A stretch of DNA of 64,000 nt, taken from contig OZ316899.1 of the NCBI GenBank assembly GCA_973895155.1, positions 15,031,974 to 15,095,973 of the forward strand, in the 5' to 3' direction. This DNA comes from Marsupella aquatica. Taxonomy: Eukaryota > Plantae > Marchantiophyta. This document shows positions 1 to 64,000 of this stretch, one piece after another (positions within the stretch are counted from its first letter, which is position 1; every line of letters starts with the position of its first letter). Both the position numbers and the translations under genes were made by a program. The notes under the pieces were generated by a model. That model was not told the origin of the DNA and did no database searches. It saw nothing but the letters and a program-made list of their open reading frames with translations.

Positions 1-14
1 ATGAGGCAAAGAAG

Positions 15-28858: not shown

Positions 28859-29298
28859 AATTCCACCTGGGACAGGTTGCAATTTAAGTGGAGGGCGGTA
28901 GTTATACTTAGTTAGAATTAGTGACCCTCCCTAGTAAGTATTCGGCATATTTTTTTAATTTTTTTTAGTTACTTTCAGTTTTTACATTGGACGCTGTGAA
29001 AAGCGTCCATTGTAACTCGACGCTGGGGAAGCGTCCACTTAGTTTACAAAGGACGTTGTGCAGAGGTCCGCTTTTGTATTAGTTCAGTTGCATGAGACGC
29101 TGTGAGCCGATGACTAGGCATCTTGTACAATGGCGGATTGCGACAGCTCAACGGGACGCTGAGGAGTAAGCAGTCGCGCTTCGCCCTAGTTCACTATGGA
29201 ACACGATTCTCACTGAGCTTACGGAGCTAACAAGTCACGCGATGGCGGAGACTGAGCTGACGACGTGACCAATACTCGCAGACATTCCATCGAATGCA

Positions 29299-36982: not shown

Positions 36983-39900
36983 TGTGATGTGCCATTTTTG
37001 TGGAAGTGAAACCCCCGAGTCGGCATTGAGGAGCGACTGTCAGTCAAGTGCATGTGGTGCATTGGGAGATTGCGCAAGTTCTTGGCATTCGGTGGAATGA
37101 ACACGGTGAATCAGGCAGGGAAGTTTTGGGGTTGTTTGCTTGAAGAAGCAAGGCAGTTGATACCTACGTATGAAGACGTTGAGCCGGAGCGCGCAGCCAA
37201 AGAACGAGCGGAGCTTGCACGATTGTGGGGAATTCACAAAATGGCATTTGTAGATACGGAGGAGGTGTTGGAAAAGTTCTCGTGGACACCCACCAGTGCG
37301 GAGCTTGATGAATTGCTTCTTCCAACACAACGCTTCGAAAGGTGTTCGAACTAACACCTACGCTTATCAAAGCCGTCTTCGCTTTACCAACAGGAAGGAA
37401 GACTAAGGTGGAGCAGAGGAAGATGTTGTCGGATGACCAGTTCAGGTCATTTCCAGGGCCTTCCACTAAGAATGGGTTTTTTAGGAATCAATGTACCAAC
37501 CCGCATATAGGGCAACTGATTGATTTCCTGAGAGTCACGTTGCATTGTACCTTGCCAAGAGCAGAAATCGGCAAAGCCCATGTATTTTTGGTGGAGAATA
37601 TCGATGCAAGCCGAGACTACAACGGCTATCTCTTAATGCAGTTGAAGAAGGCATTAAATGAAGAGAAGCAGAGCATTGGGGAGGGAGCGGTATCCAGACT
37701 AGGGTACCATCTGAAATTACTTTGCCGATATGCAAGAAGCCAGTCTTTTGCACCGGTGTTGCCTATACAGGAGCGGATGCCGATCACTACACCACTTGAG
37801 GAGGTGGAGGAGGACGAGGAGCCTCTAAGCAAGCGACGCCACGGGAGGAGGTCGGCAACACCGGCAACACAAGAATGGGAGCATTCCCCGATCAAGGAGG
37901 CAGAGGTAGTAACATATGATGTAGTGAGAAATCCGTTGCGCCAGCCTACTCGTAATAATCCATATGCAGGCATCCAATTGGTCGAGAGGAAGATGACTGC
38001 CAAAGAGAGAAAGAAATATGATGAGCGAATGGATTCGGAAACAGATGAGGAGGTAAGCCGAAGCCAGGAGAGGCCAGTATTAAGAGCTTCTAACAGAGCC
38101 CAAGTGGAGGGACCTGTGGAGGAAGGTCAACCAGCAGCAGCCCAACAATATTTGGAGGAAGAGATCGGGGGCTTTGGAGGAGAGGCCGGCATGCTAGGTA
38201 GTCAGGTTAATGTGGATGATTATGATGACGACTATGTCGATCACGGGGAGAGGCCGGTACCAGGAGTTAGAACGATGGGAAGGTTTTGTAGAAGACTTCC
38301 CGCAGTCTTCTATGGCAAGCCAGAGGACCAGAAAACCCCAGAGTCTCCTCCACCGGACGTGACACCATTGGAATTTGACCGAATGAAGGAAGCCGAGGCA
38401 GGTCTGAAGGAGAAACTCGACGAGTGGAGGGCCCAAAATGACATGCAGGAATGGCAGCTACCAGGGGGTGATTGGCCGGAGGAAATAAGATGGCTTAGTG
38501 AGAAGCAGGCCGAGCCTCTCACTGACTTCGATCAATTACGGGCAAAAGCTTGGGAGAAACGACCTCGTTGGTAGATGCCAGTATCACCTGGCAGGTCAAA
38601 ATATGCCAGGGATCGGGCTAGGGAGTATGGAGACATGTGTGGACTGCTCGCCTTAGAAATCTTTGGCAATGAGTTAGAATCCGGACCATTTCTTAGAAAG
38701 GAAATGGTTGACCAAACAAGATTAGCTAGAGGAGGCAATGACGTTGGAGCGATTAAAGAAAGAGGAGGTAATCGCTCGGCTTCGCTCCATGGAAGCCGAA
38801 GTTGCTAAGATAAAGTCTGGTCAACCAACTCAGCAGGATCTCTTGGCTAAGCACCAGGAATTGGAAGTGGCGAACAACCAATCGGAAAACTACCAATTGG
38901 ATAACCAGCAGATCAAGGAAAAATTGACAAAGGTAGAGCTGGAGTTAGCCGATTCAAAAGCAGAAGTACAGGGTCTAAATTGCCAAGTCAAGAGGCTCAG
39001 AAAGACGGCTAGGGATCAGGCCACCCAGAGCGAGAAGGCCTTGGCAAAAGCCCAAAGGAAGTATGACAAGTTACTCGACCGGTTGGAGGCCATGCGTGAG
39101 AAGCATGATGACGCCATTTGCACAGCCGCCAATGATCACCTAAGCCGAGTCCAACAGATACGCAAAGAGCTTCAGGAGGAGCTAACCAGGACAAAGCAGG
39201 CATGGACGGACAAGGTCACAAAATTGGAAGGCATCAACAATTCCCAGAGAGCCGCTTTGGATAAGCAAGAGTTTGAGATTGTGCAGATCTTAAACGAGGA
39301 GCTCAAGACGGCCAAAGAGGAGGTGCTCCGGCTTAATGAGGAGGTTGAGGATTTATCCCAAGAGCTGGAGGAGGCCAAAGACAAGATGATCGGCTTGCAG
39401 AGGTGTGCAGATAACCAAACAGAGAAGTTGCAAAAGTATGCCAAAGCTGGGCACGGATCACCAACTGGACGGTCTCCCGCTAGTGGCATGGTCGTCGGGA
39501 ATACGGAGATGCCGAAGCCGACATCTATTTTGTCAAGAGTAACTAGGGGTAAGGCAATGCAGTTGGTTGCGGATCTGGCCAAAACATTCATGGGGTCAGC
39601 AGGTACTTTTGGGGTACCCCTTAAAGCCACGCCATAAGAGGTTGAGAGTATGGCCGCCCACATTTGTGGGACTGTTGCTACAAAGGCAGTCGTGGTAGAG
39701 ATAAGTAATGCCGATGAACTTGGAGCTGTGGTAACAGGTTCAAACACCGGTACAGCCACCATGGACTACCAGAATGTGAAGCCGTGGAAGATCGATACAG
39801 GACGTATTGGAGAGCGGGCTTGGATTGAGGAAATAAAGGCCATTGCTATCCAAGTCATTTCCCAGGAGGATGCCGATGCAACAGCCAATGTCGGGGCCGA

Positions 39901-43841: not shown

Positions 43842-46800
43842 TGTTAGGAATTGACTCGAGTTCCCGACTATAGTTAGTTTGGCCTTACTAGGGTTAATTG
43901 ACCCTTGGTTAGTTTAGGATAAGATCCACTTATTTAGGCCCACACATCTTAGCCCCCCTTGGGGGGTATAGATTGGAGGGAGAGCATTCTCTCCCTCATT
44001 CTTCACATGTTCAATCTCATGAGCTATGGATCCTTCAAGATTTTCTCCATGATCGTGGTGTCTTGTTGGTGTAGTGTGAGATTGAGTGCTCTCATGTTCC
44101 GCATTGCTGTCTAGTCTGGAGCTTACAGTTTTCCTACAAGTGGTATCAGAGCTTCATGTTCGATGTTTGGTTGCCTGGATAGTGGTGAGAGTGCTCTTTG
44201 TGTTGAATTGTGGTGACGGATCAAATTGTTTTCAACAATTTGTGTGATCGTGTCACTGGTCGTTGTGCGCTAGAGGTTTTGCATTCAGAAGGAGTGACGG
44301 TTTCTCGATTGAAACTTCACATTAGAAGTGTCGGATGTGTCTTTGGCTTTCTGAATGTATTGTCAGGCGGACAGTCTTGCATTTCATTGTGCGCATCGGC
44401 AGGCACTTTGTCTCGGTGAAATTTTCACAGCGTTTCATCCAGCGAGTGCGGAGCAATATCATTTTATATTTTGTTGTTTGTAGCCTGATCTCTTTGGCTA
44501 TGGAGTCTTTGTGTTTGGCTTGATCTCTTATGGGGTCTTGGGTTGATGTTTTCTTGGGAAAATGTCGATGTTCTCTTTTTTGTTGGATCAAAGTTGTGTT
44601 TTTTCTTTTTTTCCTTTGTTCACCTCTTGGGTCGCGTTGCGCAACAATTTGCGGTGACGCCGACAATTTGTGTGCTGGAGTACCAGTGCAAGTACGCAGC
44701 CATCGGGCACTATAGCGGTGAGGTGTGGTTGTTACTTAGGGCAAACAGAAAATGACAAGTGAAGGGGTACACAACATCATCAGTTATCAATGGCTGATAT
44801 CAGTTATCTCAAAAATTTCAGAATCTCAGTTGAGGAGTTGAGATGGGGCCTTCGAACTTCCGTGCATCTCAGCTGGGCAACTGAGGTTGACTCAATCTCA
44901 GCTGACCTCGTCGAGATGAGCGTACAGACTGAAAAAAATCGACGAGATGGGGCATACGGACCAAAAAAAAAACGGGAAAAAAAATCAAAATTTTCCCCAA
45001 AAACAAAATTTGGAAAAAAAATGGGTCACCGCAAATTGCGGAAAATCAGGTACACTAATGAACAGTGATTTTGTCCAAAAATCACGCCGTGTTTAGCGCT
45101 TATTCTGAGTGGTGGTGAGAAATTTCACCCGCAAAACAGTGTGTTGTCGCAGCTCAGTGGTGGTGAGACAGTCTTCCATGAAACACTGTTCCATCGCGGT
45201 TCGTTGGTGGGAAAAAACAGTACCCACGGAACACCGTTCCGCGACAACTTGGTGGTGGGAAAAAAAAGCAGTGACCCACGGAACGATGTTCCGTGGCAGC
45301 TTTGTGGTGGGGAAAAACAGGGACCACGGAACACCGTTCCGCGGGTGCTTTGAGGAGAAAAAAATAAAAATTTTGGATAACTTTTTTCAGAAGCAATTCT
45401 TTGCCAAATCATTTTCAGATATTGGTAGTGTACCTTATAGGCTACGCGGTGGTGCATTACAGTTCCACTTTTGCCAACTTTCATTTTTTGGTGATTGTGT
45501 GTAGAGGTATTTTGGTACTTGTGTTTCCTGTGTGTTTGTGTTAGCATCAATAACTTCACGAAAGCTTGCAGCGCCAAAGTTTGAGGTGGAAAAGTTTGAT
45601 GGGAAGGTCAGCTTTAGCCTCTAGACTCGGAAGGTCACCAACGTGTTGATCCAGCAGGGTCTTGAGAAGACCATCACTGGAGTGAAGCCCTCGACTCTTA
45701 CAGATGAGGAGTGGGAAGACATGTCGGTGCAGGCGTGTAGTACAATTGAGTTGTTCTTGGCGAACAACATTCTCAAGAACGTGTTGGGGATGGATCACAA
45801 CACCAAGAAGATTTGGGATACGCTTACTCAGCTATACCAAAGTACTTCATTGACTACTTGCATTTACCAGTTGGAGCGGCTATTCAGGTTGAAGTTGCAT
45901 GATGGTGGAAACAGGCATGATCATCTTAGTCTCTTTGATGAGATTGTGCATGAGGTGACCACGTCAGAAGATAAGTTGACCGATGAGTACCTTGCAATGC
46001 ATTTGTTGATGTCGCTTCCGAAGAGCTTTTCAACGTTGGTAACGGTCATCATGCATGACAAGCCTACATTGAAGCTGGATGCGGTGAAGGCCACTATTCT
46101 TGCAGAATGGAGCAAGCAACATCTATCTTCCCGTGATGATGAGTCTGCTGCCTTAATGGTTAGAGGTAGATCCTCTGAGCGTACTGTGGATCAATCTAGA
46201 TCTAGATTTCATACAGATCTAAATCTAAGTCCTATAGTAGGAAGGTTCAGTGTTGGCATTGCCATGAGAAGGGCCACACCAAGTGGTCTTGCCCTTCTTT
46301 GACCAGGCAGAAGCGTCCTGCTTCCGATGGTGCATTTTCATCTTCAGCTGGCATTGTGATTGCTGATCATGAGGATGGTGCTGAAGTGCTATGTATGGGT
46401 GTAGTTAATTCTGTGTATGACAATAAATGGATGTTGGATTTGGGTTCCTCTTATCACGTGTGTCCAACGCAATCTTATTTCTCTACTTACCAACCATGTA
46501 CTGGTAGCGTGGAAATCGGCAACGGGTCCGATGTGAGATTGTTGGCATGGGCACTATCAAATTCCGGATGTTTGATGGTGTTGTGCGAGCATTGACGAAA
46601 GTCAGACACATAATAGACATCTCTAAGAACTTGATTTCTCTTGGTGCTTTGGAAGCTGGTGGATATCATTTCATTGCACGCGATGGTGCGCTCTTTGTTG
46701 TCAAAGGTGAGGTATCTTTGATTAAGGCACTCCGACAGAATAATTTGTACATCTTGCAAGGAGATGTCATTGCTCCTAGAGTGGAGCATATGGATTCTAT

Positions 46801-47210
46801 GGTGGAACGTTTGGATGCAGTGGCATCGTCGGTTGCTTCAATTGAAGTACCATCAACATCTGGTTGCACACATGCCATAGACTTATGGCATGCACGATTG
46901 GGGCACTTGAGTGGTAAAGGATTGGCAGCCTTGGCAAACAAAGATTTGCTGCAAGGCGCACAATCTAGAAAACTTTCTTTCTGTGAAGATTGCAATTACA
47001 ACAAGCAGAGGAGAGTGAGTTTCAGTTCTAGTTCCTACCATTCTCATGAGATTCTTGAGTATGTACATTCTGATGTTTGGGGTCCAGCGCCGGAGCCGTC
47101 GTTGGGTGGAGCCAGATACTTGTGACATTTATAGATGATTATTCTCGAATATGTTGGCTGTACTACATGAAGGAGAAGTCTCAAGTATTTGAGATCTTCA
47201 AGGAGTATCA
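43842..47210 (+). mobile_element. 5' half of a Ty1/Copia element (Tnt1/Tork-like), truncated within integrase
   Basis: LTR at 43842-44138 (TGTTAGG...CCTACA). tRNA-iMet PBS TGGTATCAGAGC at 44141-44152. Gag KFEVEKFDGK and LLMSLPKSF; protease WMLD.GSSYH; LWHARLGHLS; LEYVHSDVWGP. Confidence 0.9.
44765..45350. repeat. DNA-transposon end fragment in the Copia leader: ATCTCAG palindromes plus ~47-bp tandem units containing GGAAC-N3-GTTCC
   Basis: 44765-44975 is similar to 42541-42710. About four CCACGGAACACCGTTCCGCG...TGGTGGGAAAAA units at 45175-45350. Confidence 0.6.
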
Positions 47211-47221
47211 GCCTATTCATT

Positions 47222-47570
47222 AAAAGTGTATTATTATTTGATTTATGTACATTTGCACAATGAAAAGTGTACTTTTGAGCTTGGAAAAGTGTATATTTGG
47301 CCAATGAAAAGTATACATTTGGGGATAAAAAAGTGTACAATTGGCCTAAAGAGTGTATATTTGGGCAATGAAAAGTGTACATTTGGGCATCCAAATATGT
47401 ACATTTGGCTTAAGAAGTGTACATTTTAGTACATTTGGCCTAGAAAGTGTACATTTGAGTAAAAATTACATACATTTGGCTTAAAAAGTGTGCATTTCAA
47501 TGCATTTGGTCTAGAAAGTGTAGCTTTGGGTGCAACAAAGTGTACATTTGGCCTAAAAAGTGTACATTTT
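47222..47570. repeat. Degenerate tandem array of ~20-bp AAAGTGTACATTTGG units (probable subterminal repeats of the transposase-bearing element)
   Basis: Roughly 15 copies, starting right where the Copia integrase breaks off and lying 3' of the minus-strand transposase. Confidence 0.75.
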
Positions 47571-47784
47571 CCTAACAACTCTTATTATAATAAAGGAATG
47601 AACAAAAAATACTTTTAATTATGCAAAATAACAAACATTCATATTCATAATAATCAAAAGTTTAGAAAATGAGGAGATAGTCTAACTAACACTCAATGAC
47701 ATGGTCTCACAAAAATATAAGTTAACTCTTACATAAAAACTAGTACTAACTATCTAATTATACCTTCGCTAGTGACAACTAAGT

Positions 47785-50700
47785 CTACTTGTCCATCCTT
47801 TGGAGATAACTTTGGACAGTTTGTAAAACATTTTGAGGAATCTTCAAACCTCTACCAACCATGTTTTCTTCTTTCATTCCAGATTTAAAACCATACATTG
47901 CAGAGTTTGCATACTGCCAATGTTGAGTGTTCTCACCAAATCCTGGATCTTGTTCCCATGTCTTGGTGGACATGAAACAGTTGAGATACCAAGCACTCTC
48001 ACTCACATCAAGTTTAGAGTGTTTAGGCCTCCACCATTCCACTGGGAATATTGGAGCATATTGTTGAGGCAAAGGAGTGTCTCTTGAAGACGCAATTGGG
48101 ACTTCATGCTTAGGGTCCACCAGACCCAAAGCTCTCACCAACCAGAAATGACCTCCACCATTTTTATTCTCCCAGTCATCCTCCAGTTGAAGAAAAACAA
48201 AGTTCCCTTCACAAATATCCTATAGGGGAATCCACCGTCCTTGTTCTCTCTCAGCTCAAGATCCAACAAATGGTGTTGCTTTATCTTCCATCTCTTCCAA
48301 GACCTCATTTTGAAGAGTCGTCATCTTTGCATTCTCCTCATCTTCACTTGGAAGACCACTTTGTTCCGGTGGATTGACCTTGTAACCAATGCCATGGTTA
48401 GTCTTAAGCCAAAATCCATTTTTCAAGGGAAATTGAGTACTTCCCTCCCCTTCTAGTGCGAGCCCATTTGTCAACAACTCCACAATTCTCTCCCAATATT
48501 TCACAAGAGGAAATCTTTCCTTATATGCTATAGATGTCTCATCAATGCAACTCTTTCTCAAAAAATCAAGGTACTTGTTGAGAAATGGGATAATCTCTTC
48601 AGATTTGTTTTGTAGCTCTCCAATGGATTTAGCTAAGGACTCTCCACTAGGTAGAAGAAGAGAATTTGTTGTTAGATCTGTTGCCCAAATGCACCTTCCA
48701 CCAACTAGAGCCCAAGCTTGCTCTACATGGGACTTATACTGAAATATTGGTACATTATCTCTCATAGAGAAAAGAAATGATACAGGTTTTGAATGACCTT
48801 GAATATCTTTCACCTTGAAAGTTTGAAGATATTCTTTGTAAGATGCAACTTCTTGTATCAATCTGGGAACTGGATGAATGCTCTCGCATTCCCATACCTC
48901 TATCATAAGAGCAAGGAGGGTCGCAACTTCTTTGTGCTGAACTTGATATGATACCTTTGAAAATAGTGCATCAATCATGTGTATGACCAACCATTAGAAA
49001 AGACATTTGAACAGTTTCAAATACTCCTCTACTCACAAGCTCGCTAAAAAAATGCCATGACAGTCTGGTTTTTGTTGTCCTTTGCTGAATTATCCATCTA
49101 CAATGTTAGGTGTTGTGGCAAGGGCTTCAACAATGGACTGCCTTGCTCCCCATGCATGTCTTCTCCATCATCCTCATCTTGCCGGTTTGGGATGGTCTCA
49201 GTCCGACAGTTTATGCCAAGGGAATCCTGGATTGGTTCCAAATAACCTGTCAAAAATGCTTCAAAGTCAAGTAGGGCTTGAAAGAAAGGTCTGTGAGGTT
49301 CCCAATGAAGGCCATCCAACATGTCACGTGTTTTGTCTCCATTGTACTCTTCAAGGTCTCAAAGGCACTTAGCCAAGGATGTCACCGTGAAATCGGCATC
49401 CCCTAGCCAAAGGCCAGTGACACTAAAGTGTGCGTAAATCCTGGATCTCTCCCATGAGTCAACATCTCTGTGAGAGCAATAGGTAGCGGCATTCCATGAC
49501 CTGAAAGCAATTTAGGAGTACTAACCATTTTTGGAATCCATGTTTTTGCTTGATCCATCTTGTCATGAATAATGCAAAGATATTCTCCTAGGTGTTGCTT
49601 GGCCATCACTCGATGAGCGTAGTAAACATATCTACGTGACATTTGCTCACAAAGATGTTGCGCTCATTTTTCTTCAATTTCAGCACATTCTTTTTTCCTT
49701 CTTTCCCGCATCAAATCGTCTTTGTATTCACAACAAAGAGTACACTTGGCAAATGCACCATCTTTATGGAAACTGAAGTTTGCAAATGAGGTGCTCCAGA
49801 TCTTGTAGAGAGTATTCTTTGTGACGGGAGGAAGCCCTTCTTCCTTCATCTTTGTTCTCACATCTTCTAGAATCTGTAGCTTCTTGTAACACGCCGAAAG
49901 ACGGTACTCAATGGAGTCTGTCCCATGTGCCCCTCCATAAGGCATATGAGGCATGGGCTCTGCATTTTGAGTCAAAAAAGCCTCCAAGAGAGCTTGTGCA
50001 TGCAAGGTATTTGCCCTTGTTTTCATCAAGCCCGTATTGCCATGGAACCCAATTTTGCAACCCTCCACGTATCTCCTTTTGTAATCATAATATTTGGTGT
50101 GGCTAAAACCATGGATAATTGCAAATGCATGTCTGCATACGACCATACCCTTAAGAACATGGTGTCCCTTATCACGAACATCATCCTCTCTATAGTGAAA
50201 GAGGTTGAAAATGTGTGACGTTTTTGATTTGCTAGACATCCCATGAAATTCCATCCTAATATCTTCGATGTTTTCCCTTGGCATAATGAGACAACATTTA
50301 TGCTTGCAACAATTTTCTCTTTTCACGTCATCAATTGACGCTTCTCTTGTTTTTGAAATTGCCTTGGTTTCCAACAACCTCTTCTTTTCATTTGGATCTA
50401 CTTGATTCCTCTTGTTAAAATTGTACGGCCTTGAACGCAGTACTCCTCTATCACTTACATCCTCATTGAGTTCATCCCTATCCATTGAGTCCATCCTCTC
50501 AGGACCTTCCACCAAAATGTCCAACAATTTTTTTCCATTTGCCACTAGTTTTGTTGAATCAATCCGCCATCAAATCAAACTCACTACTCCCCTGTGGATG
50601 TTGGGAAAGTATTGTGCTGCCACCACATCTTTCACAGCAATCCCAACATGGTCATCGCCAAGAATTTCATCATCAACTGCCGCCGTCACTTGAGGGGTAG

Positions 50701-51521
50701 TGATCGTTCCAATGGCAACCATATTGGTTCGATCCAAACCTGTGTAGAGTTCAGCCAACTCTGACATCCAATTTTCCCAATGAAAATAATCACGCTTAGT
50801 GTATGTGGTGTTTGCCAAACAAGACTGTGAAACAAAATCCGCCCCGTCCTTCTGCTTGTTAGAGGAAGATTTTTTGCTCCCATCGATATCAACATTCCAT
50901 ACTTATTGTGGACATCAACCACATCCCATAGAACCCATGAGCCCTTTGCCTCTTCAATTGTTGCAGCTCCACCGTGTGCGTAAGGTAAAGTCTTACTACC
51001 ATGAATCACATCGGTAATTTTCACACTAACCCGGGACTCACCGAGTAATATGTTATGGCATCTCTCCATTGGATCGGTCTTGAAAACAACTCCAAAGGCC
51101 ACACAATGGCCAGAGATAAACATTTCAACCTCATTGCCTGGCCTTAGGGTGGTCAAAGCATCCTCTACATTTGCAGATTTATGGATGTTGTTATCTGGTT
51201 GAGTCAAACAACTACCAATACTGATGCGTTTTTGAGTAATTTTATCCGCAGATCGATATGCACACAACATATCCCAAATGACACATGAGTCAATGGCATC
51301 ATGAAGATTTTCCGCCCTAGGCATTGGAAAAGGGAGCTTTCTGGTCTCCTCAAAGGCCTTCTCAATGAGAACCCCAATTCAATTCTATCCCAACAAAATA
51401 TTTTGAACACTCTCTCGCGGATCCGTCTTTTGAACTGTCCCACTTCCAACATCATAACCATCCATTGTCAAGGTCACATCATTGCCCCTAGAAAACCTTT
51501 GAGACATCCTTTCCCTATTTC
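47785..51521 (-). pseudogene. DUF7869-type (Sola-like DDD) transposase with three N-terminal DUF8039-like repeats and a Cys cluster; many stops and frameshifts
   Basis: CCKHKCC, VCRHAF..IHG, FAKCTLC, IIHDKMDQAKT, L(Q)MDNSAKDNKN, FLMVGHTH(..)IDALFS, and C-terminal VEWWRPKH. Upstream intron at 51522-52367 (AAG/GTGAGT...TGCAG on the minus strand). Confidence 0.8.
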
Positions 51522-51559
51522 CTGCACACTAATAAAATGGATTAAGACCAAACTCATGC

Positions 51560-52165
51560 AAATTTGGATTGAGACCATTTGAATATAAACTTTACTTAGA
51601 CCATCCGAGTCTGGATTTGGACTAAGACCCTCTGAGTCCGGATTTGGACTGGGACCATCCGAGTCCGGATTTGGACTGAGACCCTCTAAGTTCGGATTTG
51701 GACTGGGACCATCCAAGTCCGGATTTTGACTAGGACCTTCCGAGTCTGGATTTGGCCTGGGACCATCCAAGTCCAGATTTTGACTAGGACCTTATAAATT
51801 TGGATTTGGACTGGGACCATCCAAGTCCGGATTTGGATTGCGATCCTCCGATTCTGGATTTCAACTGGGACCATCCGAGTCTGGAATTGGACTGGGATCC
51901 TTGGAGTCCGGATTTGGACTAGGACCATCCAAGTTCAGATTTGGACTGCAATCGTCCAAGTACGGATTTGGAACTCGATCCTCCAATAAGTCCGGATTTG
52001 GACTTGGACCATCTCAATCCAATATTGGACTCGGACCATCCCAATCCAAACTTGGACTCGGACCATCCCAATCCAAGATTGGACTCGGACCATCCCAATC
52101 CAAATCCCAATGCAAATTGGGACTCTGACCATCCAAGTCCAAACTTGGACTAGGACCATCCTAGA
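51560..52165. repeat. 27-bp palindromic tandem repeat array (about 20 units) in the transposase intron
   Basis: Unit GGATTTGGACTGGGACCATCCGAGTCC. It shows as 9-aa periodicity in spurious ORFs. Confidence 0.92.
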
Positions 52166-53429
52166 CCAACCCAGGTAAGACATTGGGAGATGAACCCCAA
52201 ACATCTTAAGCTAAGAAAATCCAAATTTAGGAAAACTCCATATTTTACGGATCTCCCTATATGGTGTAGCCTAAAGTTGGCGTGATCTTAAGCTAGACAC
52301 TAATGTCTACATACAGTTTCATGAAATAATGGAACCTTATATTTGAATGCATTAACCTTATACTCACCTTAGTATTAAAATCTGGTAGAAGATGAATATC
52401 ACATTCAAGGGATATACTTTGTTGTTTCCAGATTGGTAAAAACTTTCCCAAAACCTTGCAATGCAAGCTATATGAGGCTAAATCTTGGGAATAAAAAACA
52501 ACTTAAACCCTAAACCACACTTCTCTATAAAAAATAAACTGAAAGGACTCCAAAAGCCAGGAAGTTGGCTGAGTTGACCCATTGCAAGTAAGTGGCTGAG
52601 TGCCGCAATGAAACTCCGAATTTAATGGAGCTAAGATTTGGGAAACTAGAACAAGAATGAGCTCCGAAGAGGACGTCTTCCAAATTATACCCTTGGCTTG
52701 AGTCAGTTCAACCAGAAATCTCGTGAAGATAAGTGTCAAGTATCCTTTCACCTTAGCTTGCAGACACACCTTATCTTTGCAAGGCTAAATGCGCGGGGAC
52801 AACCATGCAAGGTCATTTGGTAGCATTTAGGGCGCCGTATGCAGGAGGTCAAGGAAGGTGGCCATATGGAGGGTCGGGGCTGCAGGCCGTACGGATGCTG
52901 CAGGCCATACATAGGGAGCCAGCCATACGCAAGGTGAGGCAGGAGGTCAAGGCAGGAGGGGGTAAAGGGGTGAAGAGGTCCTGCCAGGACCTCATTCTCT
53001 TCTGCTTGCTCTCCATCTCTCCGCTCTGCTCTGCTCTCCGCTCTCTACCTCTTCGCTCTCCTCTTTGCTCTCCTCTTTGCTCTCCGCCTCCGCCTCCCCT
53101 CCTACCGGCGCCTTCCGTCTCCATCCTCCACAACCTTAAACCCTTTGCCTCCGCCTTCCGCCACCACCTCCATCCGGGCCTCTTAGTCCCGCCTCTTACC
53201 CCTAGATCGGATGCCTGCTAAGACACCACGTGTCATTTGCCATGCGTATTCAAGATGGAAGTGAACCGTGTCCTTGTTGGGGTCCTTGTGTTGTCCTCCA
53301 TGGAGCCAACGGAGGAGTTGGACCTCTCCTCTGTGAACGACAATGTAGAATTGGCACTCAAAGACTCCAGACAATTTCAATCACGAATCCCTAGTAAGTA
53401 TGCATCACCTATCCTCCCTAAGTCTTAGA

Positions 53430-53565
53430 GGACTCGGACCATCCCAGTCCAAAGTTGGACTTGGAGGATTCCAATCCAAAGTTGGACTTGGACCATCCCA
53501 ATCCAAAGTAAGTTGGACTCGGATGATCCCAGTCCAAAGTTGGACTAGGACCATCCTAATCCAAA
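53430..53565. repeat. Five copies of the 27-bp palindromic repeat in intron 1 of the ParB-MTase gene
   Basis: GGACTCGGACCATCCCAGTCCAAAGTT units. Confidence 0.9.
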
Positions 53566-54881
53566 GACAAGAATGAATCCCGATTGTAGGTGAAGGTCTA
53601 AAACTATCTCAAGTTGTACGTCTAACATGGACAATGTTTATGATGCAGGGAGAAATCTTGTTGGTTTCAAACCCGCAATTGCAACGGCTGACTGCCTGGA
53701 CGGATTCTTACTAGACGACGGGTCCCCAGGTTTCCGACGGGGGCTTGACTTCTCAAGGACCCCGCTTAATAATGAAGTATCAATAGGCACTATTGACCGG
53801 TTTTGACCTTAAAGTGCATATCAAATGATGGCCTGACTTTTGTTTCCGGACCTGTGGTCTCGGTTGGCATTGGGGGGAGAGGGATGAATTTGGTCATTCT
53901 GGAGATGCACAACAGGTCCTATTGGGTGAAACTTAACCTCGTGTCAAAGGCATACTCCTCAGAATTCAAAGTCAAATGGCACGCAAGTGGGGAATTGAGC
54001 GTGTTGTCAATGGGTTTTTTTCCAAAGACCTATGACACAAAGAAGTTGATCGTCGGGGTAACCGGTATGCTTCCAATCGACATTATGTATGGGTTTCAAT
54101 ATTTGAAACTCAACATGATGAAGCACCAAGGTAGTTTTTCTTTTCCAACTACCTGGACCTTGAGCAATTTACTTGAGAAAGCTGGATTGTTATCGTTGGA
54201 GTCAGGCCTGGTGTTTTAATCAATAAGGAAATTGCATTTGCTCCCAAGTTTGATTTAGTCAAAGCAAAACAATGGGTAGAATCTTTGTCCAAGGGGCAGA
54301 AGCTTCCAAAGTTGAATACAGACCTTGCACCCAAGCAAGCGCCTGAGAAAGCTCCAGAACCTACAACTGAGACCGCAGGAACTACAGCAGCGACCTCTCA
54401 AAGAGCACTGGGAAAGCGAAAACAAAGCCAAACAAAACCTCTGGTTGAAAAGAAACTGCCAGTTGAGAAGCCGAGTACGAGAAGATGAGTTGAGAATCCG
54501 GTTGAGAAGCCAAGTACAAGAAGCCGAGCTAAGAAGCCGGTTGAGAAGAAACTTCCAGTTGAGAAGCCAAGTGCAAGTGAAAAGAGGCCAAGACAGAAGA
54601 AGAAGTAGAAAATTGACAATGCCATCATGGATGACACTACAGAGAACCTGACAGTGCATTCACAAGATGTGGACGAGCAGTTGGACGCTCCTGAGGAGAA
54701 GAAGGTCTGAGAAGGTAATGAGGTACTGCAACAAATGGAGCAATATTATACGTTTGGGATCAATTCAATATTTTCTATTCCCGTAGAGAGTATTTTCCCT
54801 GCGTCGGCAAGACTTTGTTACAGAATGTTGAATGCAGACCATGTAAAGGATGTGGCCAATTCCATGATAAGAAATCCGGGG

Positions 54882-57800
54882 TGTGATGCCTAGCCAGGAA
54901 TTATTAGGCCAATTTAAATAGTAAAATCAGGACTATACCCTAGGAAACACCTTAGTATAGTAACAAAAATAGGGAAATATAAACAATTAAGGCTGACTAT
55001 GGAACCCGAGCCGAGGCCGAAAGTAAGGACGCCGGGGGAGGGAACACGATCAGGGTTAGGGTGCACTAAGTACCGGCGGCTATGGGTAACCAAAGGGAAA
55101 GAAGACCAGCCAAGGGGGGGGTAAGGACCGAGCGCAAGGAATGGCAGCTCATTTGCAAACACGAGCCAAGCGGACGACTACGGGAGGCCAACTACTGTCC
55201 GCTGCTCAGGCAAGCACTCGGGGTGGAAGCAGATACCGACAATCAACTCAAGAAGGGTATGAGCAACGTCAATCAAGCTGCTCATTTTTGGGGATGCCTG
55301 TTAGAACGGGAAACTGAGTACATTGGGACCTACGAGGACGAAGAATCGGAGAGAGCGGCTCGAGAATGGTAGGAGCTCGCTCGGCTGTGGGAGCTGCAGA
55401 AGTTTGCTTTCTTAGGAGGAGAACTCATTACGGCTGAATTCTTGTGGACGCCTACTGCCGACAAACTTAACGATCTTCTGTTTTGTGAGAACAGAATAGT
55501 CGGCATCCGGGAGGCCATCAACCGCTGCAATGACATACACTGGGAGTTGAAGGGTAGCACGAAGGGGTGGACAAAGGCAACCGTGCTAGGAGAAACATCC
55601 ATGGCAGCCGTTATGAAGAGGAAAGGGAACAACAACAAAGAAGCCACCCCTGCGAAAAGAACAAGGTCGGCGGCACCCAGGAAACCAGCAGAGCAGGGAA
55701 GCAGGAGGCAAGCGGAAGCCAAAGAGGAGGAGGTCAACCCCGTCAATGTCATTCCAACAAGAGATGACACCTAGAAAGGCTGGGCGGCGACCCTCCCCAA
55801 GGAGGTGCAATTACACTTTGCACGGGAGGAGGATGCATGCCTTACGGCTATGCAAACTCGGAAATACCAAGGTTTCATGGCCGGATCCGGCTTGGAAGCC
55901 TTTGTAAAGTTACCATGGCTAAAGCCGGAGGTGCCGGATTCAGACTTACTAGAATTCGTGGGATCATGGGAGCCCAAGACCAATTCCACAAGGGTGTATG
56001 GGAAGGATTTCTATCTCACTCCCCGGGTGATTGCCGAAGTGTTTGGCTTGCCGATGGGCAATAAGACCAAAGTAGATACCAGGAAGACCTTGCCAGACAG
56101 GGAGTTCTGGTCGTTTCCAGGGCCATCAACAAAGAATGGCTTCTTCCGAAACACCTGCACCAACCCGCACATAGGAGAAATGATTGATTTCTTGCGGGTA
56201 ACCATGCATTGTAACTTGCCGAGGGCAGAGATCGGCAAGGCACAGGTCTATCTGGCGGAGAGGCCAGACCCAAGCCAAGACTACAACGGGTACCTCCTCA
56301 CCCAACTAAAGAAGATCTTGAAGGAGGAACAACTGGTGATCGGCATGGGAAGCGTGTCCCGACTTGGTTATCATATGCCGCTATTGTGCCGGTATGCCAG
56401 AAGTCAGATATTCACCCCGGTATTGCCCCTGCAGGCAAGAGCACCAGAGGAGGTTCCAGAACCGAGGCCGACAATAGAGACACCGACCCACCCGACAGTC
56501 CTACAATTGAGCAAGTGTTTAGGCCGAGGAAGGAGGACTTGCCAATGCAGCAACCAGGCATGCAGAATCTGCTGAAATTGCTGGAGAAGGAAAGGAGAAC
56601 GGCAACGGCAACGGCAACGGGACCCGTACAGAATACTGCTCCCAAAGTCGGCCTTAGCCAACTTACCAGGGAAAACCCCTTTACCGGGGTCAAGGAGAGA
56701 AGGAGGCCGGAACACGAGCCGGGAGTCCGAATGTATGTAGGAGCTTCAAGTCCCGAAGCCGAGGAAAAGCAGCCCAAAGCTCCTAGTCGCGATAGGGAGA
56801 AGATGAGATCAACGTGGAAGCCAGAGGAACCAGGACCCGTGATCTGTGAGGCCGTGTTCATGGCAAGACCAGGACAGCAGCGGGGGGAGCCGGTAGTCCA
56901 AGCCGAGGAGGAGGCGGTAGAAGGCTACGACAATGATGACTCCGGCTACGGGTCAGACCATCATGTTCCAGGAATAAGGACCTGTGGCAGGTTCATCCCC
57001 ACTCTTCCAAGAGTAGTTCGAGGGGACCCGACTCAGTAGAGCAGCCCCAAGTCTCCCCCACCAGATGTCGCTCCCCCGAGCTTCGACGGCATAAAACAGA
57101 CGGCATAGGAGTTTCAGGAACAACTTAGGGAGGAAGAAGAGGCAGCCCTGGCTAGGGAGAAGGATTTACCAGGAGGAGAATGGCTAGAGGACATCAGGCG
57201 GCTTGCAAAAAATGAAGCAGCCCGCCAGCCACGATAGAAGAAATTTGCAAGGCGGCTTGGGAACAAAGGCCGCGGTGGATGATGCCGATGACTTCTACTC
57301 ACTCCGCCTATGCTAAAGAACGAGCCATGGAGTACGGGGAGATGTGTGGGGAACTTGCGCTCGGCATCTTTGGGGAGGAGTTGGAGTAGGGACCTTTTTT
57401 CCAGAGGGAAATGTTGGAGAAGCGCCGATTAGAAGAAGCGGTGGCTTTGGAGAGAAGCAAGAAGGACGAGGTCATCCGTCGGCTTAGGGCAAGGGAAGCC
57501 GAGGTAGAAGACCTGAAGGCGGCCAAGAAAGCCCAAGATGAGCTGCGGATTAAGCGGCATGAGCTCAACATCATGCAGGGGCAATTGGATACCGCGCAGT
57601 CTGATAATCAGATTATCAAGGATAAACTGACTCAGACCCAAGGTGAGCTGGCCGATTCGATCAAAGAAAAGGAGAAGTGGAAGCAAGAGCTGAGAGACGC
57701 AGAGGAGGCCCACATAGCAGCCAACAATCTGGCCATGGCGGAAACTCAGAGAAGGGAACGGGCGTTGAAGGGGGAACTCGAGGATATCCGCGGAGCCCTT

Positions 57801-59595
57801 GAGCAGAAGGAGGCCGAGTTAGGGAAATCCTATCAGGAGATTATCGTGCTGCGGCAGGAGCTTGCATCCATGACGGCCAGCTTCAAGGCCAACCTCCGCA
57901 AGAAAGACAACCAACTCGACCAGACTTATGCCAAGATGAATAAAATGGAGTCTGAGGTTGTTATGGAGCTCGACAAGGAGCTGAGAGCAACCCAGGAGGA
58001 GAGGGCTACCTTAAAGGAGGAATTGGAGGAAGCCCAGAAGGAGCGGGAGGAGGCGCGCAAGGACCTGGATGAATTGCAGGAAGAGTTGGAGGAAAGCACG
58101 CGGAAGATGGAGAACTTACAGCGGCGAGCCGACAACCAAACGGAGCGGCTGAAGAAACAAGTCGCAGTATTTAAGTGCTTGGCTTCCTTCAGGTCCAACT
58201 CCAATTGGGGCAACCAAGTTACCAGGAGTAGTATTGGCCGAAGGACAAGCCAAGACACTTGCACCGGTGCCGGAGGTAAGTGGCAAGGGGAAGGGGCCAG
58301 CTGCCGAACCAAAGAAGAAGAAGCGAAAACCTTTTGGGTCAGGGAGTAATACGGCTCCTCAAGCCGTTGTGACCAAGGAGGTAAACCCAACACCAACCTC
58401 AGGCAGGGTCACGGCAGAGGATCCAACTGCCCTAGAAGGCGGGGATGGCAAAGCCAAGGCCAGGATACTCGGTGATGAAGCCAGGGTACCGGATCCACCA
58501 CTAGAACATGTCGGGGAGGCCGTGGCCGATGCTGAGGCCAAAGCCGAGGGTGGACCCAGTCAGGCCGATGGAGAGTTGACTTGGTCCGGAGCAGGTAATC
58601 TGTCAGAGGGCGGACCTACGGTAGTGGCTGTGGAGGAAGTGTTGGGGGCGTCCATTGAGGACCAGATACCACTGCCATGACAATGGTGGAGGGCCGCTCC
58701 TTTTAAGGAGGCGGACGTGGAGGGAGGAGGCGTGAGTGGGCAGGGCGGGCTCAGATCTCCAAGTTTAGAATTAGGATCAGGACCAAGGGGCGGCCCTGAC
58801 ACTTAGCTTAGTGGGATTGCGGATCCACTGGTAAGAGCAACACTTGTGCTCCTGCCTCACTGTACATAGGTAGATTACAGTTAGGTAGATTACAGTAGGG
58901 TAGATTAGGCTTACGCTACAAGGAATTAGGTGGATCCACTACCAGGATAAGTACCTGGGCAGTGGGGAGTTGAGGGCCTTCTTCCTTAGCAAGTTTTTAG
59001 TGCACCAGCAGGGCTGGGATCAAGTAGTTAAAGAAGCTCTCGGTTAGTTATACTGTGACCCTTGTGTATATTCATGTTTCCTCATACCTAAGAGATGAAT
59101 AGAGTTGGCCTCACGGCTTAGTTCGCAGATCTTGTATATGAGAAGTACTCTTTGTATGGCAAGTGCATGGTATAACTCAGTCAGAAGGAGTCATTTTGCT
59201 ATTTGTGTGTCGCATTAACTTGTTTGAAGATTGCCCACATCAACCAAGAAGGGAGTAAGCAAGGTAGTAAGAGTTGGATGTGTCGAGCTGAGAGAGGTCT
59301 TAGCGGCTTACCCAAGCCAGTTGGGGATCATTCCGGCGGCGGAATCCAAACATACCTAAAAGGAAACCGAGAGAGGAGGACAAGGGAAGGCCTAGAATAG
59401 GCCGGCTACGTATCTCATGACCCGATGAAGGATCTGTCCAGTACATGTGAGTAAAATGTTAAATAGTAGTAGAAGGAAGTTAGCAGCGTCCCATGCCGCT
59501 AAGCCGCAAAATTGGCCTCGCCAAGAGCAAAACCTGCTGGAATCGGCTTGTGCAGAGGGGTTTCTTGGGTTTAGGGAGCCATGGGACGCACCACA
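54882..59595 (+). mobile_element. Unit A: 4714-bp solo-LTR-like element with accessory ORFs and no gag/pol
   Basis: TGTGATG...CACCACA termini. Perfect TSD CGGGG (54877-54881; the right copy is reconstituted after removing element B). Upstream ORF at ~55000-55550 and main ORF at ~55601-58680 (accessory domain plus long coiled coil), both with stops. Confidence 0.85.
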
Positions 59596-59598
59596 CGG

Positions 59599-60427
59599 TG
59601 TCGTGCCGAAAGATTTTGGCTCAAGAATGGCTTTTATAGGGGATGATGGGCGAGGCCTCCCGGTTGGGTTGCGTGCATGCTGACTTGGAGGGGTTGCTTG
59701 GTTTGTTGGATTGAGGTTTGGTGATTGGGTGACTCATCGTCACCAGGTTTGGTGTTTGGGTGAGTCACCAGGCTTGGAGTTTGGATGAGCCTCGCTGCTG
59801 GCAGCTGGCTCAGACTGGGTGGTTGGGTTTTCGATGTTATTTAAGACTTGAGCCTCGGCTCATTGAGGTTGGCGGTTGTCTATTGAGATCTGTTGAGTTG
59901 CGCTCTGTGAGTTCCACTCCGTTCTGCGGAACTCGACTGTTGTGCGGCGGTTTTGGAGTTCTGAGTGAGTTTTTGATCCAGGTGGGGAATTTCTCAAGTC
60001 TGGAGTCTCGTTGATCCAGGCGGGGATTTCTCAAGTTTGGAGTCTTGTCGATCCAGGCAAGATTTCTCAAGTTTGGAGCCTCGTTGGTCCAGGCCCGAGT
60101 TCCGTGCGAGTTGTTTTAGACTAGTGGAGTAGCTAGTCGAGTTTTTGGTTTTGTGAGCTAAGGAGGATAGTTTTTCCGTCAAATTTTGAGTAGTCAGTCA
60201 CTCGAGGAGTTCTACTCGACAAGTTAGAGGTAGCGGCCCGCCGTAGGGCCAACTACCAGACTCTTGCGGGCAAGCTTACTCGAGGGCACCTATTGTAACC
60301 TTTGTGAGAAAAGTAAAAAATATAAAGGAGTGAGAGTTCCCTCCAAAAAGTGCTTGTCACCTGTCCCGATCGCAGCCAGAAATGCGTAGTTTGCCCGAGG
60401 AGCCCCTAACTTTAAGTCCTTGCGACA
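59599..60427. mobile_element. Solo LTR B (829 bp) with a 4-bp TSD
   Basis: TGTCG...CGACA termini. ACGG at 59595-59598 and 60428-60431. Three ~38-bp internal repeats at 59977-60095. Confidence 0.8.
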
Positions 60428-60969
60428 ACGGGGCATGAACCACACATTGCAAACTTGATTCCTTACACTACAAAACATAGAAACCTAATGCAATATGACA
60501 ACACGGAATCAGATAGGAGAGACTTTGTAGCAGCCATGAAAAAGGGCAAGGTTCAATTCATTGCCATTAGCGGTCAACATTCGGCTAGAGCAGCCAGATG
60601 GATTCGAGAATGGGCAAAGAAGGATGCCAAGCTAACAGCATTGGAAAAAAAGCTGGAATTTCAAAAGTCAAGAATATTATCTCATCAAACACCATTGTCA
60701 ATATTAGTTGAGCATTCAATGTGATCGAATGCTATCAATAGCACAGTGGTGTTTCAGTCATGCTTCAAAGATACAGTCGTTCATGCCAAGCAACAATTTA
60801 TGGAATGTGAAAGACCTAACCAGCCAAAACATGGGGACAACAAAAAAAACGCTCAAGACAACCAAAAATTTCAGGTACAAAGTGTTACTGCTTGATGGGT
60901 ACAATACCATAGACTCTCCATATGTGGTTACAATTGAGATGGGGATTTTTGAACACAAAGCTTCAAGTT

Positions 60970-61315
60970 TGGTTTGGATTGAGATGGTCCGAGTCCAGAT
61001 GGATTCATGCACATTCAGTACAATATTTCCACTGATACCATCTAGTTTTGTGTTGGACTGGGATGGTCCCAGTCCAAATGGATTCACGCACATTCAATAG
61101 AATATTATCATTGATATTGTCTAGTTTTGTGTTGGACTGGGATGGTCCTAGTCCAAATGGATTCACGCACATTCAATATAATATTTCCACTAATACCATC
61201 TAGTTTTGTTTTGGACTGGGATGGCCCCAGTCCAAATTAAATCATGCACATTCAATAGAATATTTCCACTGATCAGACTGTCTAGTTTTGTGTTGGACTG
61301 GGATGATCCCAGTTT
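60970..61315. repeat. Five ~80-bp tandem units, each containing the palindromic motif in inverted orientation, in intron 2 of the ParB-MTase gene
   Basis: TTGGACTGGGATGGTCCCAGTCCAAA cores at about 60973, 61053, 61133, 61211 and 61293. Confidence 0.9.
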
Positions 61316-63486
61316 GCACCTGAGTGCATTCAAACAATTGAGTTATGGAGCTAACAGACTTTCCTTTGCAATTGTAGGATTGGTTGGCTCTTGCAAGAAT
61401 GACCATGAGAAGGAAGGATTGTCAAAATGTTTACTGGTTACTTTTTGCTGACAATGCTCTTTTAGATTTATGGAGTTTGGTATGCCAGTTGTGGTTGGAT
61501 GGAAAACTTCCTGATGGAGCTGGGGTAGAAGGAAATGAGAAGTCTGAAAAAGCAATTACTGTTGCCATGTTTCGTTGTTTTGATGGTGAGTTGATCTCAC
61601 AAAGAGACATCACAAGAATACTGACGCGGGTGAAGTCAGGAAAGGTATTGCTAAAGAAAGACGCCTCTAATAAATCAGACATGCCATCTATAGAGGAGTT
61701 GGCCAAAGATGTGAAGATCGTGCGGAAACTGAAGTCCCTTATTGAAGACTACTATTGCACCAAGGATGCGGTGAATTTCCCGATAATTACTAATTGGGGG
61801 AAAGTAGTTGAGGTTCTTCCTACGCTAACAATTGATGCAGAGTTCAGCAGGTGTCAAAGAGCCGTTGGCGAGGTCTATCTTGCCAACCTTTTAAAGCCCA
61901 ATCATACGCGGGAGAGCGCAATCTTGCCGATGGCATTGGCATTCCGCCTAGATGATATATATACTGCCAGAAATTTGGCGGATGATCACGTTCTTGGACC
62001 CTACCATGGGTTACATTTTTAGCGACAATCTCATGAAGACCATTGATCCAGAGTCATTGCAAGAAGCTCCTCCGACCTGCCCTCTTGCCATTGTTGATTT
62101 TAGCCCCCAACAATCCAAAGCCAAAATTCTTGTATACATCAAAGGATGTTGATTACAAAGTATGCAAGATTGACAAGGGAAAGGGAGAGGCTAAGGAAAC
62201 AGATGAGGGGACACAAAACAATGACCTAAAAGTGGTTTTGGACCCAAAAGAGGTAGTCAAGATTATGAATATGGCCCCTTGATTTGAGACAGTTGGCAGT
62301 CGCAGTGGGTGGGTTAATCCTCATGCCAAACCCACGCGGATGATCCGAAGGATTATTGAATCCTTGTCAAAACCGGGAGATTTGGTTCTAGATTTTTTCT
62401 CCGATGGCCAAGTCATGAAGACATCATTTTTTTGCGATAGGGAATGCTTTGTTTATTGTGACTCTCAGTTCGAGAGGCATTTTGAGGAAGCTTTTGCTTC
62501 CTACCTTTGCGAGAGAGTTCCCTCACTTAAAGCCCATTGTGAATCACTTGCTGAAAATTCTCGACAATGGGCTACCACTGGTGCGGCTGTAGCTGTCGCT
62601 GTTGAATCCAACGGTTTTGAGTTTGAAGATGTTGCTGACAAAGTGGCTGAAGGCGTAGAGGCATCAAAGGGGGCATATGTCAAGAATTTGGATGACCGTG
62701 TTGGTCAAGGTGAGCCTTACAATGTAGATGATGATATTGGACTTTCACCAAACCGTTCATCTGGTTTAGATGACATCCCTCCGGGGCCCAATGAAGTTCA
62801 GGTTGATGATAACTTGGACAAGGATGATCCCAATCCAACACCGCCAGGAGGACAGATGGAGCAAATGGAAGGAGCAAGGGTTGATACATTTGATCGTCTT
62901 TCTTCAACAAATCTGATCAATGAAGGCGCAACGAGGCTTGGAGATTCAAATGAAGCTGAAACTCAAGAATTGACTCCGGGGGAGATTGATGGATTGCCTG
63001 ACATTCCCATCAATCCAGGAGAAAATTCATCAACGGTTGTTGACAACCAGGCAGGTGCTTCAACTTGTCTTGACACACTCTTTTCAGCTTCTGATGACAA
63101 ATTGGTGTTAGTTCGCTCACACTCGGGGAGTCCTATTGTCCTTCCGCTATCAAAAAAGAAAGGGAATAGAGTTGAATCAACTGGATGGAGGTCATTCCAG
63201 ACGCATGATGTTACGTGTGGAAAATTGGGCCAAATAGAGGCCAAGAAATACCATTGGATGCTGCTCCTTCAATTCTAAATAAGGAGGAGTATAAGAGGGG
63301 AGAATTGGGGTTGATAACTCATGTTTGGACTTCACCTTATTGGGTAGAACAAAGTACTTCAGATGTCAATTTTGAAATCCAACAGGAGCTTGGTGCTGAC
63401 ATGATTATTGATGAATACGGATCTCTTATTTTGGGATGAAATTCAGCCTTTGACTTTCTATTTATTCATACCAGTCTAAAATACTT

Positions 63487-63855
63487 GGTCAAGTGCAAGC
63501 TAGAGGGGTACTGAAAGGATCTCCATTTTCTCCACCAAAAGGACATAGGTCCTTGGTAAAAGCAATCACTAGAGGACAAAAAGACCAAAATGTTACATGG
63601 AATGGCCAGGATTGTTTTGGTGAGATTGAAAGGTAAGATCTTGCATGCCAAATCTTTGGAAGTGTGTCCACATATTTCGGAATTTAAGAAGAGTGCCCAA
63701 TCTTTTTGGAAGTGTGCACAATCTTTTTGGAAGTGTGCCCAACCTTTTTGGGAGTGTGCTCAGCTAAATCTTAATGACATTTATACTCCTTTCACTCTCC
63801 TTTTTGAGCTAGTCCTTGGGGACTCCTTTGGTACCCCTCTAGCTTGCTTTTGACC
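63487..63855. mobile_element. 369-bp MITE with ~38-bp TIRs and 4-bp TSD ACTT
   Basis: GGTCAAGTGCAAGCTAGAGGGGTAC... / ...GTACCCCTCTAGCTTGCTTTTGACC. ACTT at 63483-63486 and 63856-63859. Internal 21-bp repeats at 63655-63765. Confidence 0.8.
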
Positions 63856-64000
63856 ACTTCTTGGTCCACAGAATGCGCTCACCAATTAAAGTCTCCATAT
63901 CCGTCTACCCATTGTGGGGCTTCTAAAAATGGTATGTAGGTTACTTTTTTTCTTTTTTGTCAGCTGTTGTCCTGTATTTTTGGACTGAGACAATCCAAAC

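Follow-up and report, generated by a model that had tools for sequence, protein, structure and literature searches.

The window analysed here is a 64,000-nt stretch of contig OZ316899.1 of the liverwort Marsupella aquatica, and its right-hand part holds 16.8 kb from the left side of a large cut-and-paste DNA transposon, a decayed member of a liverwort family of such elements. In this copy, a broken DUF7869 transposase gene on the minus strand and a broken large gene of ~1000 codons on the plus strand are arranged head-to-head, and the closest named relatives of these genes are found in liverworts. The transposase gene and the large gene, whose product combines a predicted ParB-like domain with a domain resembling DNA methylases, form one mobile unit, as an earlier note on this DNA had proposed. 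As a whole, the explanation that we favour, with moderate confidence, joins this anatomy to a transposase that would mobilise the element, a ParB-like domain that would bind palindromes of the element itself, a methylase-like part that would be non-catalytic, and accessory genes that would serve the element.

Two Genes in One Mobile Unit

The head-to-head pair of transposase and large gene recurs in a 10-kb ENA contig (L003) and in two loci of Calypogeia fissa (L007 and L008), and its order and orientation are shared by four loci, which come from two genomes or more, with protein identities of 37–57%. Moreover, L007 is an apparently complete relative of 13.7 kb, in which three genes lie within terminal inverted repeats of 32 nt (2514–2545 and 16223–16254, arms 97% complementary), and both of its flanks read AGAG, a 4-bp target duplication seen at this single locus. 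Since the pair recurs in L003, L007 and L008 and is enclosed in L007 by terminal repeats with a duplication, the two genes are one unit. Immediately inside each terminal repeat of L007 there are TGGACATTTGGGCATTTTAATA repeats, and its 22-nt subterminal repeats read TGGACATTTGGGCA.... The large gene is also a multi-copy sequence, with relatives of its N-terminus on at least seven contigs of C. fissa, which speaks against the single-copy host gene that had been considered as the alternative.

With regard to the window copy, its left terminal repeat begins at 47207, so the element start at 47210 given in the earlier note was essentially right. The left end at ~47206/47207 splits a copia integrase reading frame, and TGTACATTTGGGCA repeats follow at 47246–47570. 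The interrupted sequence (45643–47206) encodes copia-type gag and integrase, changes frame once near 47125 and is truncated at the left end of the transposon. No continuation of this copia frame was found downstream up to window base 64000, which fits an element running past the window end. Position 63440, formerly taken as the other end of the element, was rejected as such: it marks a stop codon only, and the relatives continue with a third, NIF-like gene and a right terminal repeat. In the window copy, both of these would be expected beyond base 64000. The features of the element in the window are the following:

47203–47206: GAGT, adjoining the left terminal repeat on its outer side; it may be one half of a 4-bp target-site duplication, the right end being past the window
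47207–47238, plus strand: left terminal inverted repeat ATCAGCCTATTCATTAAAAGTG..., with 19 of its 22 first bases as in the L007 repeat ATCACAGTATTCATTAAAACTGG
47246–47570, plus strand: subterminal array of 20–22-nt direct repeats TGTACATTTGGGCATTGAAAAG
47786–51507, minus strand: pseudogene of a DUF7869-type (probably Sola1-like) transposase, recognised by Pfam DUF7869 (E=1.3e-8) and by tblastn to L003
51599–52170, plus strand: palindrome array 1, ~27-nt units, upstream of the transposase coding sequence
53430–53567, plus strand: palindrome array 2, same palindrome, in the head-to-head intergenic region
54672–54881, plus strand: predicted ParB-like domain, first half (YYTFG...IPVESI...CYRMLN..HV...NPG), tblastn to P0054 residues 45–115
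54882–60428: insertion of 5547 bp in the ParB-like coding exon, with CGGGG duplicated at 54877–54881 and 60429–60433
60429–60874, plus strand: remaining half of the predicted ParB-like domain (FIAISGQHSARAA...), in which TGA interrupts the frame at 60722–60724; the exon ends before GT
60875–61377, plus strand: intron with a palindrome array, GT and AG edges
60966–61313, plus strand: palindrome array 3, 79-nt units with the core TTGGACTGGGA-TGG-TCCCAGTCCAA, inside the intron 60875–61377
61378–62119, plus strand: middle domain and start of the methylase-like domain, including LAIVDFSP and a frame change near 61980
62120–62243, plus strand: deletion scar, ~140 codons missing with respect to P0002 residues 238–384
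62244–62531, plus strand: methylase-like block VNPHAKP and motif I (VLDFFSDG), PF01555 26.8 bits, E=5.9e-6
62532–63439, plus strand: acidic linker and conserved C-terminal domain (...DEYGSLILG), stop codon at 63437–63439
63440–64000, plus strand: spacer 3' of the large gene; a palindrome-like unit starts at the last window bases

In the spacer, a 40-nt inverted repeat (63486–63525 and 63817–63856, 80% complementary) surrounds a 21-nt tandem repeat, GAAGTGTGCCCAATCTTTTTG, at 63688–63759. Some further rearrangements occur among the C. fissa loci. In L008, a second and inverted transposase copy (1–5271) abuts the element, and a ~1.5-kb sequence (2653–4287) is found again, inverted, after the NIF-like gene (16630–18085), as well as upstream of the large gene in the locus L001. 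This repeated sequence could correspond either to nested copies or to a separate repeat.

The Transposase Gene

One piece of open reading frame (ORF) on the minus strand matches the Pfam family DUF7869 (E=1.3e-8), and the transposase pieces of the window keep 33–58% amino-acid identity with the relative in L003 (tblastn), which looks intact and has a DUF7869 match of its own with E=1.4e-37. Compared with L007, the nucleotide identity is 66.7% over 2.9 kb. The tblastn matches of the window change reading frame within stretches that are single ORFs in L003, and the gene is therefore a pseudogene. The transposase is probably Sola1-like, judging from a label that fits the 4-bp duplication (a single instance, in L007), while at the protein level only Pfam DUF7869 was matched. 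Duplications of 4 bp are listed for both Sola1 and Sola2 (PMC12477816 supplement), and the term DUF7869 was not found in our literature search.

The Large Gene and Its Decay

The large gene spans positions 54672–63439 of the plus strand and maps to the relatives P0054 (1009 aa) and P0002 (901 aa) in five segments (54672–54881, 60416–60829, 61378–62119, 62244–62531 and 63048–63427). A search with the middle exon among 1.84 billion proteins gave 51 matches, and the full-length relatives measure 900–1200 aa. The large protein begins with an N-terminus predicted to adopt a ParB/sulfiredoxin fold and continues with a middle domain, which is conserved, and a methylase-like domain of the beta class; an acidic linker then leads to a small domain at the C-terminus. 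The exon edges 60874 and 61378, which had been read from the letters of the window, are exact, since GT follows the first and AG precedes the second. An in-frame stop is located at 54708–54710, 8–9 codons 5' of a MEQYY/MEKYY start, and the same occurs in C. fissa (L001, ~9857); the shared stop hints at a splice acceptor conserved at this place, with the lysine-rich N-terminus encoded by an exon further upstream.

That the window copy is dead, as previously claimed, follows from an insertion, an in-frame TGA, a frame change and a deletion. The TGA (60722–60724) stands where the relatives carry arginine, and the frame change lies near 61980. The insertion of 5547 bp interrupts a ParB-like exon that is uninterrupted in L001, L003 and L007. 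It had been described as part of a set of long terminal repeat inserts, a description that stays unproven: long terminal repeats and terminal direct repeats of the insertion were looked for and none were found, and a long terminal repeat element was considered and set aside for the lack of terminal direct repeats. Parts of the insertion resemble window positions 12512–12933 and 37439–37771, and it is accordingly a repeated element. It contains long ORFs without Pfam matches, at 55805–56575 and, with a coiled coil, at 57411–58349, and its G+C content is higher (0.52–0.54).

The N-terminal ParB-like Domain

The spliced gene of the window was searched exon by exon, and single-exon scans of the ParB-like pieces against Pfam and NCBIfam gave nothing; when PDB sequences were searched with the N-terminus, by phmmer or with a profile, the only matches were at chance level. 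Structure prediction offered a different picture. An AlphaFold2 model built from 29 sequences, for which 26 further N-terminal relatives were collected, reached a predicted local distance difference test (pLDDT) of 84.8 and a predicted template modelling score (pTM) of 0.79, compared with a pLDDT of 37.7 when 9 sequences were used. A Foldseek search of this model against PDB returned ParB or Noc in 12 of the 12 best matches (E from 5e-3, probability 0.89–1.0), followed by sulfiredoxin, KorB and SbnI, and the named matches in BFVD were mostly ParB/Spo0J-type, ParB/sulfiredoxin or DNA-sulfur-modification proteins. The model thus supports a ParB/sulfiredoxin fold for the N-terminus of the large protein, as had been suspected from its motifs, and ParB-type folds were returned by both structural databases. 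A close-up view of the N-terminal alignment reveals that the G, Q and H of an SGQH motif are its only nearly invariant columns.

The Methylase-like Domain: Conserved Block, Lost Motif

A beta-class methylase block, which had also been anticipated, is present in the window as NPHAKPTRMIRRIIESLSKPGDLVLDFFSDG, and this piece scores 26.8 bits against the Pfam family N6_N4_Mtase (PF01555; cut-off 26.7, E=5.9e-6). The intact relatives reach 18.5–23.5 bits, under that cut-off, and a profile of the family matches the methylase M.RsrI (PDB 1eg2) with E=3e-5. Motif I and the HPxxKP-type block that precedes it are kept, with the glycine loop of motif I shortened (DFFSGG). The earlier note had found no clean DPPY in the window, and this turns out to hold for the family: the catalytic motif [DNS]PP[YFWH] is absent in 9 of the 9 family proteins checked. 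About 195–210 residues upstream of motif I there is a conserved (I/F)(V/L)DF[SATG]R, and this is, on its sequence and position, the leading candidate for a degenerate form of motif IV. The spacing between motifs IV and I in M.RsrI is similar. In the window, the candidate remnant of this motif is the LAIVDFSP at ~62084–62107.

Two metagenome contigs, L005 (271–3300) and L006 (3–3662), carry the large gene as a single ORF without the palindrome-bearing intron that is present in the genomic loci L001, L003 and L007, and they may be transcript-derived or intron-less copies. The ratio of nonsynonymous to synonymous substitution rates (dN/dS) between these two intact ORFs is 0.25 for the ParB-like domain, 0.14 for the middle domain, 0.29 for the methylase-like domain and 0.63 for the linker. 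The comparison shows a pattern of purifying selection on the large gene in two intact copies (dN/dS 0.14–0.29).

Palindrome Arrays and a Third Gene

An imperfect palindromic unit, GGACTnGGA-nnn-TCCnAGTCC, forms arrays along the element. The sequence GGACTNGGANNNTCCNAGTCC matches 25 times in the window, in all cases at 51619–62836 and hence within the element, when 0.03 matches are expected by chance. The palindrome had been described as occupying introns of both genes, and one half of this is confirmed: there is an array in the intron of the large gene, and on the transposase side the array at 51599–52170 lies upstream of the mapped coding sequence. In the relatives, L003 shows GGATCGAGA-GCG-TCTCGATCC arrays between the two genes and in the matching intron (7032–7285), and L007 shows GTCGCCTCGAGA-CGA-TCTCGAGGCGAC arrays in the intergenic region, in the matching intron (10661–10754), in the gap between the large and the NIF-like gene, and 3' of the latter. 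The arrays of the window, L003 and L007 occupy homologous positions and keep an arm-3 bp-arm design with lineage-specific sequences; the same design and positions with differing sequences indicate that the arrays have been inherited with the element. Midway between the two head-to-head genes there is also a CT-rich simple repeat with CTCTCC units (53007–53097), similar to one in L007 (8115–8505), and it may belong to a promoter region that both genes share.

The third gene follows the large gene in L001, L004, L005, L007 and L008, starting 270–1840 nt after it. In L004 (4374–5480) and L005 (3572–4510, on the same contig as the large gene) its product matches PF03031, the family of NIF/FCP1-like phosphatases, with E=1.6e-18 and E=2.6e-19, respectively. 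The catalytic DxDxT motif reads LDLNK or LDCNG at all five loci, with the second aspartate lost, and the NIF-like protein is probably a pseudo-phosphatase.

How the Element May Work, and Competing Explanations

In the explanation that we favour, the transposase would recognise the terminal and subterminal repeats and mobilise the element. The ParB-like domain, as a dimer, would bind the arrays of 21–27-bp palindromes (9–12-bp arms and a 3-bp centre) by analogy with bacterial ParB on parS, and in this way the methylase-like part would be carried to the DNA of the element itself. This part is more likely a non-catalytic or atypical binder of DNA or S-adenosylmethionine than a standard N6-adenine/N4-cytosine methylase, since motif I and NPxxKP are kept, which fits cofactor binding, and (D/N/S)PP(Y/F/W) is missing. 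The NIF-like protein would act as a non-catalytic partner. Altogether, these accessory genes would serve the element and not the host, through expression, protection from silencing or control of transposition. An extended version of this scheme would see a ParB-parS-like module in a land-plant transposon, with palindromes that co-evolve with the protein, and a methylase fold without catalysis that forms, with the pseudo-phosphatase, a non-enzymatic chromatin or anti-silencing device needed for the persistence of the element. We advance it as a speculative idea, which is unlikely to hold in this full form.

Several observations weigh against the favoured explanation. Both termini and the duplication are seen at one locus only, and L001, with large gene and NIF-like gene, lacks a transposase within 9.8 kb, so that the unit is not always complete. 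The transposase copies within C. fissa diverge about equally at all codon positions, a pattern expected of neutral decay, and these copies seem to have decayed neutrally following their insertion. As for the ParB-like domain, the Foldseek E-values are modest (none ≤1e-3 against PDB), with a template modelling score of ~0.35, and no ParB profile of Pfam or NCBIfam was matched, the sole hint being DndB with E=0.024 in one member. The GxxRxxA motif with which ParB binds cytidine triphosphate (CTP) is replaced by SGQHSA, and membership among canonical CTP-binding ParB proteins is for this reason not supported. The position of motif IV is likewise uncertain, since a forced global hhalign against the methylase of phage Sitara puts DPPY at another strand, FVQPG, which stands as an alternative. 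Finally, we only infer that the ParB-like domain binds the palindromes, and these might just as well be sites for the transposase or elements of transcription control.

This last point leads to the alternative that survives best, though we consider it somewhat unlikely: that the arrays are not ParB sites but binding sites of the transposase, promoter or enhancer elements serving the two divergent genes, or else a satellite or miniature inverted-repeat transposable element that colonised the transposon. Internal repeat arrays are common in other large DNA transposons, and two of the arrays are found between the head-to-head genes, a region that must contain both promoters. Independent colonisation is argued against by arrays that three lineages keep at homologous places (the intron, the space between the genes, and 3' of genes) and in one arm-3 bp-arm design, though with different sequences, and a separate 22-nt subterminal repeat offers the more usual type of transposase site.

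A second alternative holds that the large protein is an active N6-adenine/N4-cytosine DNA methylase, targeted by its ParB-like domain and marking the element's own DNA. Such self-marking has been suggested for the protein of the Ectocarpus element Sola1-1 (PMC12477816), and it would agree with the conserved motif I and NPxxKP block, which match PF01555 and M.RsrI, and with the dN/dS of 0.29, indicative of purifying selection on the methylase-like domain. We regard it as unlikely, since the (D/N/S)PP(Y/F/W) motif appears in 0 of 9 family proteins (the best positional candidate being DF[SATG]R), the intact relatives fall under the Pfam cut-off and motif I has a shortened glycine loop. The remaining alternative, a host gene that stands next to the transposase by chance or a passenger picked up once, is favoured by L001 and L002, where the large gene has no transposase within 10 kb, and is nonetheless largely refuted and most improbable given the recurrent order and orientation of the pair at loci as divergent as 37–57% in protein identity, the location of the gene inside the L007 terminal repeats, its dispersal over at least seven contigs of one genome and a comparable pairing reported in a brown alga (PMC12477816).

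Surroundings of the Element

The window is plant-like, not human, and it is rich in copia and Ty3/gypsy genes. In one Ty3/gypsy element (22832–31815), gag and pol are long ORFs that stay open over 1017 and 983 aa, and an 838-aa ORF without Pfam match (29299–31815) follows its pol.

Related Systems and What the Family Means

The closest known system is Sola1-1_Ec32, a 21.5-kb Sola1 element of the brown alga Ectocarpus with an opposite-strand gene for a 1104-aa protein that joins a ParB-like domain and a DNA methylase (Dinatale et al. 2025, PMC12477816). The best BLAST match of its transposase is the Repbase family Sola1-1_PPa (PMC12477816). By description, both systems are giant cut-and-paste elements with a 4-bp duplication and a ParB-methylase gene of ~1000–1100 aa on the opposite strand; they differ in the brown-alga host and in terminal repeats of 282 bp, against 32 nt in the liverwort family. 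The name alone of Sola1-1_PPa leads us to take it as an element of a moss (Physcomitrella). The description of Sola1-1_Ec32 mentions neither a third NIF-like gene nor the state of the catalytic motif nor palindrome arrays.

A second parallel is offered by the giant Plavaka elements of red algae with the accessory genes PAG2 and PAG3, which encode one protein with PF01555 and SET domains and another with ParB and 2-oxoglutarate oxygenase domains (Petroll et al. 2025, bioRxiv 10.1101/2025.02.11.637652). Tandem arrays of inverted repeats lie beside their ParB-like gene and were proposed as ParB-like binding sites (bioRxiv 10.1101/2025.02.11.637652). Transposon-borne PF01555 and ParB-like domains with adjacent inverted-repeat arrays are thus shared with the liverwort family, whereas the transposase belongs to another superfamily and the two domains reside in two separate proteins. 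Moreover, methylases linked to ParB have been reported in chlorophytes, chytrids and haptophytes (Iyer et al., PMC4738411).

With the ParB-methylase genes of phages and prophages and the bacterial ParB-parS systems, the family has in common a ParB/sulfiredoxin fold next to a beta-class amino-methylase and the logic of palindromic sites, but both the CTP motif of ParB and motif IV of the methylase are non-canonical in the liverworts. A prokaryote-type amino-methylase fold in eukaryotes is also found in N4CMT of bdelloid rotifers and in MpDN4MT1 of Marchantia, itself a liverwort; MpDN4MT1, however, belongs to the host and has a canonical TSPPY and demonstrated N4-methylcytosine (4mC) activity, whereas the present family is transposon-borne, lacks TSPPY and adds a ParB-like domain. 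The capture of a prokaryote-type gene by a plant element, as had been suggested, finds no traceable donor, and a capture specific to plants is unlikely. In tblastn searches with full-length relatives, one phage (two records) gave a 68-residue match restricted to motif I and plasmids gave nothing; pattern scans of bacterial genomes and Joint Genome Institute (JGI) metagenomes returned motif-I matches only, save for one short contig with a family member. No close sequence relative was detected in phages, plasmids or bacterial genomes.

Within a literature coverage that is incomplete, no description of this family in liverworts or other land plants was found. Since a similar pairing was reported in 2025 in a brown alga, we see here a land-plant example and not a new kind of element. 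What is new is the land-plant family itself, with its third NIF-like gene and its position-conserved palindrome arrays, together with catalytic motifs, of the methylase and of the phosphatase, that are lost throughout the family under selection.

Transposons that carry DNA-binding and DNA-modifying genes of their own could control their own epigenetic state. Such elements have so far been mentioned in passing for brown, red and green algae, and those of liverworts extend them to land plants, in a family that offers intact and dead copies for comparison as well as a conserved NIF-like partner gene. A missing catalytic motif under selection sharpens the question of whether the protein writes a mark or only binds, and the position-conserved, lineage-specific palindrome arrays give the ParB-like domain a concrete candidate for its binding site. 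Tests of these ideas are feasible, as a chromosome-scale assembly with annotation exists for C. fissa and Marchantia, another liverwort, is amenable to genetics.

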